Shown: positions 52,678 to 58,938 of the stretch, piece after piece
Layout: the number at the start of each line of letters is the position of its first letter
Position numbering within the stretch: position 1 is the first letter of the stretch
DNA from: Utricularia gibba
Taxonomy: Eukaryota; Plantae; Magnoliophyta
Length of the DNA stretch: 64,000 nucleotides
Direction: 5' to 3'
Assembly: GCA_002189035.1 (NCBI GenBank)
Contig: NEEC01000011.1
Span: forward strand, 2,170,001 to 2,234,000
The notes under the pieces: model-generated
The model's database searches: none
Told to the model about the DNA's origin: nothing
Seen by the model: the letters and a program-made list of their open reading frames with translations, nothing else
Made by a program: the position numbers and the translations under genes

Positions 52678-55127
52678 TCAAATTCGACTGGAGTCCCTTC
52701 CTAGGACAAATCGCCTTCCCCAGTCTGCTACAACCAGGTATCTTGTTCTCCAGCTGACTTGCTTGCTGCAGATGCATTAATGCAAAACAGCATTTTAAAT
52801 TAAGCAGAAGAAAGAACGGATACTAGTATGTTCATTAGGTGGCACTATTCATTCACCTGGCATAAACAGAGTACCACAGCCACTGTGTGCTGTGGCCAAT
52901 GGAGATCCAGTCACCTGGGAGCTCAGCTGCAGCTTGTTCCCCTCCCAGAGGTGCAAACTGACCGAAGTGCTTGTACCTTCATTCCACAAAATTGGTTGAC
53001 AGGTAACACAAGGCAGTAATGCAAGTTGATGCAACCAAATGCTTTTATCACCTAAATGGACGGAAGCGATGCCTTCCTTCACCTCGGAACCGTATAGGGC
53101 CTTCAGGGTTCTTCTCACAGATCTCCATACGGTTGAAGCAGTCAGCAAGATATTGGCCTTGCTGAGCAGCCACCTACAGTATAGGCTTGCAGAAAGTAAG
53201 TTCCAGTGTGCCTAGAATGCATAAAGATCACATAACAGGACGCCAAACCTGTGCTGTTGCTGGAAGATTTTTCATCTGTGAATCAACCTCAGCGAGTGCT
53301 ATCTTAAACTTATCGATATCCAGCTGTTCATCTCCTCCAGAGTTCTTGAGAAGATTGTTAAAATTCTTGAGTTGCTTCTTCTTCAAATAGATTTCAATCT
53401 GTGGATACCTGTCACAGATATCATTGATCACTTCCTTGAAGTCCTCAACTCGAAGGTGTCCAGTCCCTTTTTTGTCTGCTTTGCTGAATATAGCTGCTAT
53501 GTCATCCTGGCAATAAGTTTGCAAGGTGAAGTTTAAACTACAGGAGCCCATCCATCCTCTCGAAACACAAGAAACCTTCCTCAGAGAGAAACACATACCA
53601 TGACTTTACGTTGATTTACTGTGGCACAGTCACCCAAGGCATAGATACTATCACATCCTAGAACTCTTAGCCACTCATCTGTGGCAAGTACTCTTCGGTT
53701 TGCCTTTACCATTTGACACAAAGGAATCAGCACCAGCAAGTGACAATAGACATAAGTACACTGAGATATACCTGACCAATTTCCTTCATAAAATCCATTA
53801 CAACAGGGCGAGTTCCAATGCCAGTGGACCACACAACCATCCCATAAGGTATAGAAACCACTTCTCCTGTTGCTCTTACCTTAGTCATTATTTCCTTTTC
53901 AGTCACCTTTGTAACCATGGAGCCAACCTTCAAATCGATCCCATCTCTTTTGAACTTATCCTCAGCAAAAAGTGTTATCCTTTTGTCAAACCTTCACAAC
54001 CATGGATGGATCCTTCAGTGAGCAAAATGTAAAAGAAGAAGAACAGCATTATTATAACTACTGGGAGCTGACATACATGTTCAAGATGTGGTCACCAGCC
54101 TCAAGTAGTGTAATTTTGACAAGGCTTTTGATGCTGGGGTAAAGCTTTGCTAAATCCTGAGTTACAAAATCATGGAGCTCTGCTGCAAATTCCACCCCAG
54201 TAGGACCACCTCCCACGACAACAAATTTCAGAATCTTCTTCTTTTCCTCCTCACTCACACTTGGAAGACTTGCTCTCTCAAAACAGTTTATCACGGAGTT
54301 GCGAATCCTCTGTGCATCCTCTATTTCCTGCAGGGAGAATGAGAAGCTTGATCCCATATAACATCTCAGCACAAGGTATCACTTGAAGAATTCTAACCTT
54401 CAAGAAATGTGCGTTCTCCACAACACCAGGGGTGTTGAAAGTATTGGGACGAGCACCCATTGCTACAACAAGATAGTCATAATCCAGAGTAAACTCTTCC
54501 TTCTCGTCATTGTTGGATTGCTGGGTGGATCTGCAGTGAACTTTCTTTTTCTCCCTGTCGATTTTATAACACTCAGCTTCTATGAATTGGGCATCGAATT
54601 TCTTCTGCATTCAAATAGGGAGCAAGTCTGTGTTAGTATCAGAATCCATTAAAATCTCCCACAAAAGGATGACGGGATATCTGTTTCACCCTTCCAAGGA
54701 TGTTGCGAATCGGCTCCACGATGCTTCGAGCTTCCACCGTGCCGTTCGTGACACTCGGCAGGAGAGGGGTGAAGGCAAAATAGTTTCTTGGCGACACCAC
54801 CTGAACCTCGTACGATGGGTTCTTCAGATTCTTGAGGAAACTGGTCCCAGCCCACCCTGTTCCCAGAACCACCACCTTTTTCTTAGGAGTGCCAGCAAAA
54901 GAAGGGGTCAAGTTTCCAAACCCATCCTTCGACAGCAACGCTAGTCCTCCTCCTCCTCCTCCTCTGCAATCAAAGAACGTCGACGTTACACAGATCTTTA
55001 GCGAAAAAAAGTGAAAACACAAGAGAACGCAAACAAACCCGACAGTGAAGACTAGGAGCAGTTTAGCGAGATTGGGATTGGAGCGGTAAGCATCGGAAGC
55101 CCTCCGGAAAAATGCGTTGGCGCTCAT
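52678..55127 (-). CDS. NDB: External alternative NAD(P)H:ubiquinone oxidoreductase, NDB type (NDB2-like)
   Basis: [63 protein letters not shown]-hand insert, [27 protein letters not shown] and C-terminal GRDSSRI*. Confidence 0.96.
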
Positions 55128-56078
55128 TCTGCAAAACTTGTTCATCAAGGAAGAAGAGGAATGCGGGAGCGCAGCCCTAATACGGAGACGCATTCATGCA
55201 ACAAAATTCCGAGGATCAGCATCGAACCGTTACGTGAGCCGGGCTTCTTCCCCGTGTTAACAGCTGTCAACCTCGTACACCAATTTCGGCCCATCACTGC
55301 AACTTACTCTCATGAATAAAAAAGGAAAGTTCCTTTTTTGTCTCCATAAATAAGAAATACACCACTATTTTTGGTAGTCTTCGATCCGCATTTAACACAT
55401 GCTTTAAAAATTCTCGCTACCATTTTTAAAATCATTATTCCAATTCCATTTTAATATATAAATAAATTCGAAACTTTGAAGTGACATTTAATTGAAGTTG
55501 AATGGATGCATGTAATTTTACACAGTTGGTCAACTTCTTTTTATAATGTTTCATATTGTGATAATTTTAAATTCTCTCATATATTTAATAATGTTTCTAA
55601 ATTATAATAAATCAAAAAATGAATTAACCTATTTTCAAAATAGTTGTACAGACTAGTGTTTTGGATTCCAATAAAGAGATTGCAAATACAAAAAAAAAAC
55701 ATTAGTATTATAAAAAATCAACAAAAATGAACATGTTGACTTTAGAATACTGTTCCAAAGGAGGCTTCACTGGGGTACTGCATGACTTGAGAAGGTGAGG
55801 CATACATCAGCTGCACACGTCCAGTGAGAAGAAGAGATGAATGATATATCAGCAAGGCACTCTCTCCTAAGATTTCAACAGCCACCAAGCACAGAATGAG
55901 ACACAACACGCAAAATTGGGCAGAGATGAATAGAATGAAACGCATATCAGGTATTTTGTTTTGGCATTTAACTCCAATCTCGTGGAAGTGATGGGGACAA
56001 GAAGCTGACGGCAACACTTCTGGTTTCTGAGTTTTCCAGATCCACAGCCTTTTGATCCGTAGGGTGAGGGTATAGTTA

Positions 56079-56190
56079 GCTCAACTGCAACACACATAGA
56101 GGTATTAGGATTGTGATCACCTGCAATGCCTTTTCATTATGAGGGCTGTGCCGGATCAGCTCATGCGTTGTCCGGAGTTGCATCACGGGC
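56079..56190 (-). ncRNA. Diverged copy (A) of the tandem box C/D-like RNA family
   Basis: Minus strand reads GCCC-GTGATGC (C box)...GGACAACGCATGAG-CTGA...TTGCAG-GTGATCA. It shares 5' and C'-region sequence with copies B-D. The 3' end and D box are uncertain. Confidence 0.4.
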
Positions 56191-56280
56191 TAGCGCTGGG
56201 ATAAAGAGTATGGCATTCATGTAGTAAAGGGTTTAAATGAGCTTAGTAGAAATATCAATATTCAAATGAACAGTAAGAAT

Positions 56281-56397
56281 GCCTCAGATGGTGGAATATG
56301 ATCATTTACAAAACAGATTCACCAAGTAGGTTCTCTCTGCAGAGCAGAGACTTGGCTTCACTGCAGCTCATATAATTTCCACGGTAGCATCATGGGC
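56281..56397 (-). ncRNA. Box C/D snoRNA-like RNA, copy B (117 nt)
   Basis: C box ATGATGC, D box CTGA, terminal GCC/GGC stem, internal CTGT/ATGATCA D'/C' pair, and internal CCAAGT..ACTTGG hairpin. Confidence 0.75.
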
Positions 56398-56498
56398 TAG
56401 GGCTACAATGGGAAAACAACATTCTAGTGACAAAGGTTTAATCGAGGATCCTAGCAATAATAAAAAAAATCAAGTGCACAGCAGGAAGTGAATAGAAG

Positions 56499-56615
56499 GC
56501 CTCAGATGGTGGAATATGATCACCTGCAATACAGATTCACCAAGTAGGTTCTCTCTGCAGAGCAGAGACTTGGCTTCACTGCAGCTCATACATTGTCCAC
56601 AGTAGCATCACAGGC
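56499..56615 (-). ncRNA. Box C/D snoRNA-like RNA, copy C (117 nt)
   Basis: C box GTGATGC, D box CTGA, terminal GCC/GGC stem. Near-identical core to copy B. Confidence 0.75.
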
Positions 56616-56666
56616 TATGTTAGATTGATAAAATGCCAATATATACAGTAGACGTAGATAAACACC

Positions 56667-56782
56667 GCCTAGAAATGTGGATTCCGATCACTTGCGGAAC
56701 AGATTCACCAAGTAGGTTCTCCCTTATGATAGGGACTTGGATTCACTGCCGCTCATATACTATCCACACATTCATCACAGGC
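56667..56782 (-). ncRNA. Box C/D snoRNA-like RNA, copy D (116 nt)
   Basis: Perfect C box GTGATGA, terminal GCCT/AGGC stem, conserved GAACCTACTTGGTGAATCTG core, and an apical hairpin with changed sequence but retained pairing. The D box reads CTA (one base short). Confidence 0.6.
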
Positions 56783-56840
56783 ATTAGTGTTGCACAAGCA
56801 AAAAGAAGGCGCTGCAAAAAAACAGCAACAATAGTCCAGG

Positions 56841-56925
56841 GGCTCAGTTTTGTGACAGCTATATCAATCATGAATTTTCTGAAGCAGAACTGGCGTATTG
56901 TAGCTGTATAAAAATCATCATAGCC
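56841..56925 (-). ncRNA. Canonical-size box C/D snoRNA candidate (85 nt), unrelated to copies A-D
   Basis: Minus strand: GGCT-ATGATGA ... CTGC (D') ... ATGATTG (C') ... CTGA-GCC. Perfect C and D boxes with a GGC/GCC terminal stem. Confidence 0.7.
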
Positions 56926-58139
56926 GCAAACTGAGACACAGCATTTCCAATATCACAAAATCCATCCAATCCTGCTCATGACTCATGGTTTGGAAATCTC
57001 AGTAGAGGTAGCAAACTCATAATGACCAAGATCGAATCTTTTTATAGAAATATACGAATTAAAAACCGTTACTGGAATGAAACCATGAGGATCGTATAAA
57101 GCAATAGCACAGACACACAGCAACCAACAGAAATAACGGCATCGAGCCTATATTGCTACCCCTTATCAACTAGCGATTCATAAAGGAACGAGAAAAGGCG
57201 CAATGTGACCGTCAATTTGACACAAATTAGTCGTGAAGAAAGGTACAGTGAGACAAATCTGCAACACTAGACGGCGTCTATCTAGCACGAGCATTGGGAC
57301 TCCTTCCTTCATCCTTAAGCTCAGAGGAGCCCGGGTAGCTACATGCAAAATCATCTAAAAAAGAAGCACAATCACAAGCAAGGGGGATTCGCGTCGACTG
57401 CAGCGAACCTAAAACTCGAAAATACTAGGTTTGAAGACAGACGATTGTGCAACCAGCTTTTTGTAGTCATCCCGTCCTGGGCTTAGGGCTCTGCAGCGAG
57501 ATGGGCTCCAGCGGAGCTTCACTCCGGCAGCCACACCCAAAGCGCACATCTCATGGCCCTCAAACCACGGCCCACAATAGGCAGCCCGTCTGCAGCCCAA
57601 AACCTATTTAATTTAAAGATATTATTATTCAAAACTCAATTTTCGAAAAATAATTTTAATAAAATAGAAATTGTCTATATAACTCTTTTATGTTAATTTA
57701 AAATTAATTAATTTTTTTAAAAAAAATATGTTTTAAAATCAATTTTATTATAACACATAAATTACTTTTTTTTCAATGAGAATAAAAATTTATTTTAAAT
57801 ATTGTAGAGTCACATCTCAAAGATGTAGTAAATAATTTTTTTTATTTTTAGTATTTTTTTAAATAAAAAAATAAACTATAAATCTTAGAAAAGAAAAAGG
57901 AGATGAAAATGGAGGCGTAGAGTGTGAAATAGACTCTCCGGTTCTATGGAGTAGAAGAAGGAAAAAGTGGGTCGTGTATCATGGCCGCATCTGTCTCGTC
58001 TTCTTCCTTCTTCACTCCATATGCCTGCTTCTCTTTTCCGGAGACCCCGCTAGAAAGACACTCTGCTGGCCTGCCACTCTAACTGGAAAGAAAACTATCC
58101 CTTGTTCTCTTCTGTGGGCTGAATCCGATCGATCGCGGG

Positions 58140-58866: not shown

Positions 58867-58938
58867 GGTCCCATGGTCTAGCGGTTAGGACATTGGACTC
58901 TGAATCCAGTAACCCGAGTTCAAATCTCGGTGGGACCT
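58867..58938 (+). tRNA. trnQ-CUG: tRNA-Gln (anticodon CTG)
   Basis: GGTCCCA acceptor stem pairs with TGGGACC. A-box TGGTCTAGCGG, anticodon arm TTGGA-CTCTGAA-TCCAG, T-loop GTTCAAATC. 72 nt, no intron. Confidence 0.98.

Follow-up and report, generated by a model that had tools for sequence, protein, structure and literature searches.

What are the four tandem repeats that lie on the minus strand between positions 56079 and 56782 of the window, the whole 64,000-nucleotide stretch of DNA analysed here? The first-pass annotation, made from the letters, described them as box C/D-like RNAs and proposed a diversifying, undescribed system. The array is more than chance: it consists of extra, partly decaying snoR6/Z278 copies in a textbook plant polycistronic snoRNA gene. 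Sequence comparison indicates that the repeats are very probably tandem paralogues of a known plant C/D family (rice Z278, RF00201; Arabidopsis snoR6) within an ordinary conserved cluster. The proposed undescribed system thus gives way to the known snoZ278/AtsnoR6 family, in a cluster conserved with Arabidopsis.

Three of the repeats, copy B (56281–56397), copy C (56499–56615) and copy D (56667–56782), are 116–117 nt in length, and their bodies are mutually 77–91% identical. The fourth, copy A (56079–56192, also on the minus strand), is a degenerate relative that aligns to the other three at 56–64% identity. A repeat search returned a 124-nt pair spanning copies B and C (56276–56399 and 56494–56617, 91% identical), together with three- and four-copy sub-families. 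A 22-nt core, GAGAACCTACTTGGTGAATCTG, is invariant in B, C and D; such a match was found in none of 100 shuffles of the window. The spacers had been described as unrelated, and most of them show approximately random similarity, the exception being those of B and A, which are weakly alike.

The box layout proposed earlier is present in copies B and C, which have a C box (AUGAUGC/GUGAUGC, the latter in C), a CUGA D box and a GCC/GGC terminal stem. It fails in copy D, where a canonical C box (GUGAUGA) is found with CUAG at the place of the D box. Copy A has the boxes GUGAUGC (C), CUGA (D′) and GUGAUCA (C′), with UUGA as D; alignment to the other copies shows that neither the internal hairpin nor the 25S antisense element, described below, is present in it. 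Our committed reading of these sequences is that B and C would be working snoRNAs. Given the broken D box of D and the absence of hairpin and antisense element from A, these two copies are probably decaying, non-functional duplicates.

The family assignment was obtained using a permissive Rfam scan of 55700–57600. The snoZ278 model aligns end to end (positions 1–115 of 115) with copies B, C and D, with scores of 33.9, 33.6 and 22.7 bits and E-values of 1.3e-4, 1.6e-4 and 0.11 (1.9-kb search), respectively. The boundaries of these matches coincide exactly with those that the first-pass annotation had given to the three repeats. All three full-length alignments, however, score 2 to 13 bits short of the 36-bit gathering cut-off, which counts against the assignment, and no snoZ278 match to the repeats was reported at that threshold. 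Copy A has no Rfam match at E ≤ 10 in the same scan. The only internal helix of snoZ278 and its conserved motif AGAACCUACUUG align to the apical hairpin and to GAACCTACTTGG of B, C and D; this central hairpin, located between CAAGU and AGAACCUACUUG, is present in these three copies and missing from A. The repeats therefore share with rice Z278 the 115-position alignment, the terminal C/D boxes and stem, the central 5-bp hairpin, AGAACCUACUUG and the overall length. They differ in the segments beside the boxes, which deviate from the RF00201 consensus: GGUGAAU is found here where the consensus has cAGCUGC, and it is this replacement that gives rise to the 25S complementarity. The family is conserved across monocots and dicots.

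Orthology to the Arabidopsis genes is based on the covariance model, length and gene order. Three neighbours of the repeats, all on the minus strand, were called by Rfam at gathering thresholds: the H/ACA snoRNA snoR134 (57201–57348; RF01430, 93.1 bits, full length), the box C/D snoRNA snoZ223 (56837–56929; RF00135, 62.3 bits) and the H/ACA snoRNA snoR97 (55951–56061; RF01215, 54.4 bits). On the minus strand the order is thus snoR134, Z223, the repeats and snoR97. Fourteen nucleotides of the Z223 D′ guide match LSU rRNA perfectly, and their place on the rRNA fits Arabidopsis Am1143, which is the site of U38; this match identifies Z223 as the U38 orthologue, and the repeats consequently fill the snoR6 slot. 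Arabidopsis has three clusters of the composition snoR134/U36a/U38/snoR6/snoR97 (Kim et al. 2010, PMC2875012), and, according to the supplement of Streit et al. 2020 (PMC7464842), its U36a clusters encode snoR6-1, -2 and -3 (chr1:875224–875340, chr1:1009073–1009189 and chr4:1445731–1445848), C/D RNAs of 117, 117 and 118 nt that each collected thousands of reads. Z278 is also listed alongside snoR134, Z223 and U36a in a cotton study. Our repeats share with snoR6-1, -2 and -3 the slot between U38 and snoR97, the length (117–118 versus 116–117 nt) and polycistronic expression, the likeness being one of length and gene order. The Arabidopsis clusters have one snoR6 copy each, whereas here there are three and a relic, and U36a is not recognisable. 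Indeed, the U36a slot between snoR134 and U38 (56930–57200, minus strand) contains no Rfam match and no rRNA complementarity of at least 11 nt, and U36a seems to have been lost or to have decayed at this locus. A contig of a related species has 291 unrelated letters in place of 56930–57200.

The cluster appears to be transcribed as a unit. Contigs of the same organism from three studies tile 55742–57412 with zero differences, spacers included, and contig depth falls to zero on both flanks (55600–55741 and 57446–57700). As coverage is confined to this interval, and DNA would not stop at such borders, we take 55742–57412 (minus strand) to be a single polycistronic snoRNA precursor of about 1.67 kb. 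Two points weigh against this case: discrete mature RNA ends are absent from the contigs, and the label of the runs, ‘RNA?’, is a guess. Directly upstream of the start of coverage, past an AT-rich tract, a promoter-like region (57483–57599, minus strand) contains four Site II-type motifs (TGGGCY/RGCCCA) in about 120 bp, compared with 63 over the whole window on both strands. Judged by its motifs, this region fits the independent promoter of a plant ribosome-biogenesis gene and may function as such. About 1.3 kb past it, on the opposite strand, is a tRNA-Gln(CTG) gene (58867–58938, plus strand). On the other side, about 550 bp downstream of the end of coverage and on the same strand as the cluster, the ORF at 54639–55193 opens with the N-terminal Rossmann segment of Pyr_redox_2 and probably represents exon 1 of an NAD(P)H dehydrogenase-like gene.

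The amplification of the repeats is local, as had been suggested. Contigs of the related species fall only on snoR134, Z223, one repeat unit (copy C) and snoR97, with copy A uncovered, and diverged contigs of the same organism are consistent with a paralogous cluster. Joints of a single unit, running from Z223 into the unit or from the unit into snoR97, are found both in the related-species contigs and in a diverged contig of the same organism. Since the paralogous locus and the related species each have a single unit, the triplication, which left three copies and a relic here, is specific to this locus.

The repeats differ from a normal guide in their fold. Fold z-scores against dinucleotide shuffles are −3.2 for C, −3.0 for B and −2.2 for D, compared with −0.9 for Z223 and +0.6 for copy A. 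Z223 is thus a 93-nt unstructured RNA with a 14-nt guide, whereas the repeats, at 117 nt and a z-score of about −3, are rod-like. In the consensus fold, the rod is composed, from the outside to the inside, of a stem formed by G34-C35-A36-G37 and C82-U83-G84-U85 (GCAG/CUGY), a symmetric purine loop (UGAA/GAAU), a second stem (GCCAAGU/ACUUGGU), an unpaired AGAACCU and the apical hairpin. The UGAA/GAAU loop was considered as a K-turn and rejected, as it is symmetric and lacks a 3-nt bulge.

Three base pairs in B, C and D remain paired despite changes on both sides. In the hairpin of copy D, U50–A62 has become C–G and C54–G58 has become U–A. The same replacements (U50>C with A62>G and C54>U with G58>A, relative to copy C) are found in the diverged contigs of the paralogous locus and of the related species, where U85>C also converts G34–U85 to G–C. 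The covarying apical hairpin noticed in the first-pass annotation is therefore confirmed, and the compensatory changes indicate selection on the fold. The consensus fold also predicts pairing between a 5′ GUGGA and a 3′ UCCAC segment. D and B differ there by one two-sided change (GGAU/AUCC versus GGAA/UUCC, respectively), and C has one break; for three sequences, this putative pairing is only suggestive.

The GCAG/CUGY stem accounts for a feature that had been read as two D′/C′-like pairs. The doubled boxes (CUGC and CUGU, GUGAAG and GUGAAU) are more plausibly the opposite strands of a single irregular helix, the internal stem. Copy A, without this helix, has CUGA at the homologous position, showing that the first box was formerly an ordinary CUGA D′ box.

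An 11-nt antisense element, ACUUGGUGAAU, is present in copies C (56535–56545), B (56317–56327) and D (56703–56713), all on the minus strand. It is a perfect complement of AUUCACCAAGU, which is found in three LSU rRNA loci (L055, L016 and L002), and CUGU comes directly after it, then 7 nt of linker and a C′-like box, GUGAUCA. In a comparison with 18S, 5.8S and LSU rRNA, AUUCACCAAGU is the sole perfect antisense match of at least 10 nt common to B, C and D. The 25S stretch named in the first-pass annotation is genuine: a 32-mer that contains it, GAATTCACCAAGTGTTGGATTGTTCACCCACC, occurs in 62 metagenomic contigs, and all four of those checked are eukaryotic LSU rRNA by Rfam, one of them with a whole rDNA unit. 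Inside a eukaryotic LSU rRNA gene (L016, 2326–2481 and 7840–7992), Rfam also reports MIR2912 at 126 bits, which suggests that this model was built on rRNA fragments.

The duplex formed by ACUUGGUGAAU contains 11 uninterrupted Watson–Crick pairs and one terminal G–U, 12 in all, and ends at CUGU. Numbering on the rRNA was counted from the A-loop UG and gives the right base at five published Arabidopsis sites (A2912, G2918, U2922, G2923 and A2935). By this count the element covers 25S 2904–2914 (Arabidopsis numbering), just 5′ of the A-loop, and the predicted target at +5 from CUGU is A2908, the A of UUCACC within 25S GAAUUCACC. A match of 11 nt or longer that runs into CUGN or NUGA on its 3′ side arises in 0.7% of shuffles, an 11-mer anywhere in the RNA in 10%, and the duplex energy of ACUUGGUGAAU is equalled by 2 of 30 shuffled guides.

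The repeats resemble canonical guides such as Z223/U38 in their C/D boxes, terminal stem, internal C′-like box and antisense element of at least 11 nt abutting an internal box. Guides are expected to make at least 9–10 uninterrupted pairs with rRNA or snRNA ending at a D or D′ box, and ACUUGGUGAAU does so with 25S up to CUGU. A D′ box that forms a K-turn or K-loop with C′ is of the NNGA/CUGA type, and the internal box here is not: it reads CUGU in the array and CUGC in the paralogues and the relative, neither of which has the GA expected of a D′ box, and in the consensus fold it is base-paired to GCAG. Also unlike canonical guides, the antisense element is itself paired, as the first-pass annotation had noted, with 7 of its 11 nucleotides in the GCCAAGU/ACUUGGU stem (six of which form standard pairs in B, C and D alike), and the other box-adjacent segments have no rRNA match. 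With so much of the element inside the stem, its conservation may be structural. The match is also not family-wide, since the rice-based Rfam consensus has ACUUGcAGCUG at this place.

The entire cluster was scanned without bias for antisense matches to rRNA, with the Z223 D′ guide as positive control; none of the shuffles matched the duplex energy of this guide. For the variable 5′ segments, the D guides and the other box-adjacent segments, no rRNA target was better than shuffled controls. The idea that the first segments diversify towards new targets therefore receives no support, their rRNA matches being no better than chance. Several individual matches are described here for completeness. 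AUAGCUGUCACAAAA, which is the Z223 D guide, matches LSU rRNA over 10 bp some 78 nt upstream of the place where the 11-mer pairs (L002 ~2556, L055 ~3210), and the energy of this match is reached by only 1 of 30 shuffles. Copy A has two matches near chance level: a 13-nt perfect match to a variable part of LSU rRNA, in L055 only, and UGAUCCGGCAC, which pairs with 25S 2913–2923 across G2918 and the A-loop through 11 pairs, four of them G–U. In the spacer between B and A, the 13 nt UCAUUUGAAUAUU at 56257–56269 (minus strand) are perfectly complementary to LSU rRNA at two loci (L016 1280–1292 and L002 1204–1216). The last two U's of UCAUUUGAAUAUU and the following GA can be read as a UUGA box that places an rRNA C at +5, which by rough position may be the Arabidopsis snoR147 site C1479. 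Around it a C box is not evident, the sequence is AT-rich and a weak SNORD81-like match (19 bits) overlaps, and the rRNA match may be due to chance.

Candidates for guidance to the A-loop itself were rejected. The D guide of B and C pairs there only with two mismatches, and the A-loop region is not among the best duplex sites. A second antisense element in copies C and D, GUGGACAAU, forms 9 pairs with the A-loop including G–U, with about 0.7 such matches expected by chance, and is broken in B. Finally, no box-adjacent segment puts U2922 or G2918 at +5, which removes the array as a guide for Um2922 or Gm2918; to our knowledge, plant Um2922 is still without a known guide.

Published methylation data bear on the predicted site. 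Two Arabidopsis maps and the tomato and tobacco cryo-EM maps contain no Nm between Um2884 and Am2912, so that the equivalent of A2908 is unmethylated in these species; a literature search for mapped Nm at A2907 or A2908 returned nothing relevant. The +5 arithmetic of the first-pass annotation is therefore right, and the methylation that it predicted is absent from Arabidopsis, tomato and tobacco. About 15 Nm sites differ between plants (PMC11542601). Wu et al. 2021 (PMC8053127) matched Arabidopsis SnoR6.3 to Gm2918 of 25S rRNA and regarded SnoR6.1 and SnoR6.2 as expressed orphans. Gm2918 lies ten nucleotides downstream of our predicted site on the same strand; the rRNA neighbourhood is thus the same, but the element here predicts A2908, not G2918.

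We propose the following sequence of events. By analogy with plant clusters, each snoRNA would be cut and trimmed from the 1.67-kb precursor, and a C/D snoRNP would form on the terminal C box (RUGAUGC/A), D box (CUGA) and GCC/GGC stem, thereby protecting each snoRNA. The internal stem would then open, and ACUUGGUGAAU of copies B and C would pair with 25S 2904–2914. Whether this pairing is functional is, from the sequence, evenly balanced in our judgement. It is quite possible, if short of probable, that the family is an orphan here as in Arabidopsis and that the match is fortuitous or a by-product of the stem.

The explanation that survives best alongside ours takes this further: the repeats would be without a target in the rRNA of this species, the 11-mer would be a by-product of an rRNA-like stem, and the array would be a neutral tandem duplication drifting towards pseudogenes. 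We hold it as tentative. It accommodates the missing hairpin of copy A and the lost D box of copy D, the single-copy state of the paralogous locus and the related species, the occurrence of an 11-mer match in one in ten shuffles, the lack of targets for the remaining guide segments and the orphan status of SnoR6.1 and SnoR6.2 (PMC8053127). It does not readily explain why B and C retain intact boxes and an invariant core despite diverged spacers, nor the compensatory changes that indicate selection on the fold, nor the conservation of the family from monocots to dicots and its abundance in Arabidopsis.

Returning to the reading of B and C as putative working members of the snoR6/Z278 family, one possible function would be that of a canonical guide, with ACUUGGUGAAU and CUGU acting as a D′ guide and fibrillarin 2′-O-methylating the A of 25S UUCACC (A2908), a lineage-specific site close to the A-loop. 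We consider this rather unlikely. The geometry is that of a guide, with 11 Watson–Crick pairs (12 with the terminal G–U) abutting CUGU, followed by the 7-nt linker and C′-like GUGAUCA; the arrangement is rare in shuffles (0.7%), and B, C and D all carry the element unchanged. The assignment of SnoR6.3 to nearby Gm2918 and the difference of about 15 Nm sites between plants (PMC11542601) would also accommodate a new site. Set against these points are a box without the conserved GA, a guide and box that are both paired in the rod, an unusual C-to-D′ distance of about 70 nt, the lack of methylation at A2908 in Arabidopsis, tomato and tobacco, and a complementarity that is missing from the rice consensus.

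Pairing might instead occur without methylation, the snoRNP holding or chaperoning, while the 60S subunit is assembled, the 25S strand that leads into the A-loop (helix 92), with the internal stem acting as a target mimic that has to be opened first. The 5′ strand of the stem, GCCAAGU, resembles the rRNA target ACCAAGU, and the stem and the rRNA would therefore compete for the same nucleotides; the repeats are also far more structured than a normal guide, and Arabidopsis SnoR6.1 and SnoR6.2 are abundant and without a methylation target (PMC8053127, PMC7464842). Because a second rRNA-complementary segment above chance was not found, and the complementarity is not kept in the rice consensus, we regard this function as improbable. 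Least probable of all, and offered as speculation, is a conserved, abundant, self-inhibited snoR6/Z278 C/D snoRNP in which the rod masks an antisense element to the 25S strand that enters the A-loop helix and which, with that element sharpened in this lineage to 11–12 perfect pairs and the gene triplicated, would give a new Am beside the A-loop or a switchable chaperone for helices 90–92.

For annotation, the locus contributes a transcribed snoRNA gene of seven or eight units that had not been annotated, and it shows that snoR6 can be amplified locally within the conserved U36a/U38/snoR6 cluster. Few abundant C/D snoRNAs of Arabidopsis lack a convincing target; snoR6 is one of them, and its relatives here have a clean 11-nt match beside the A-loop. 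This match predicts an Am at the equivalent of A2908 in this species.
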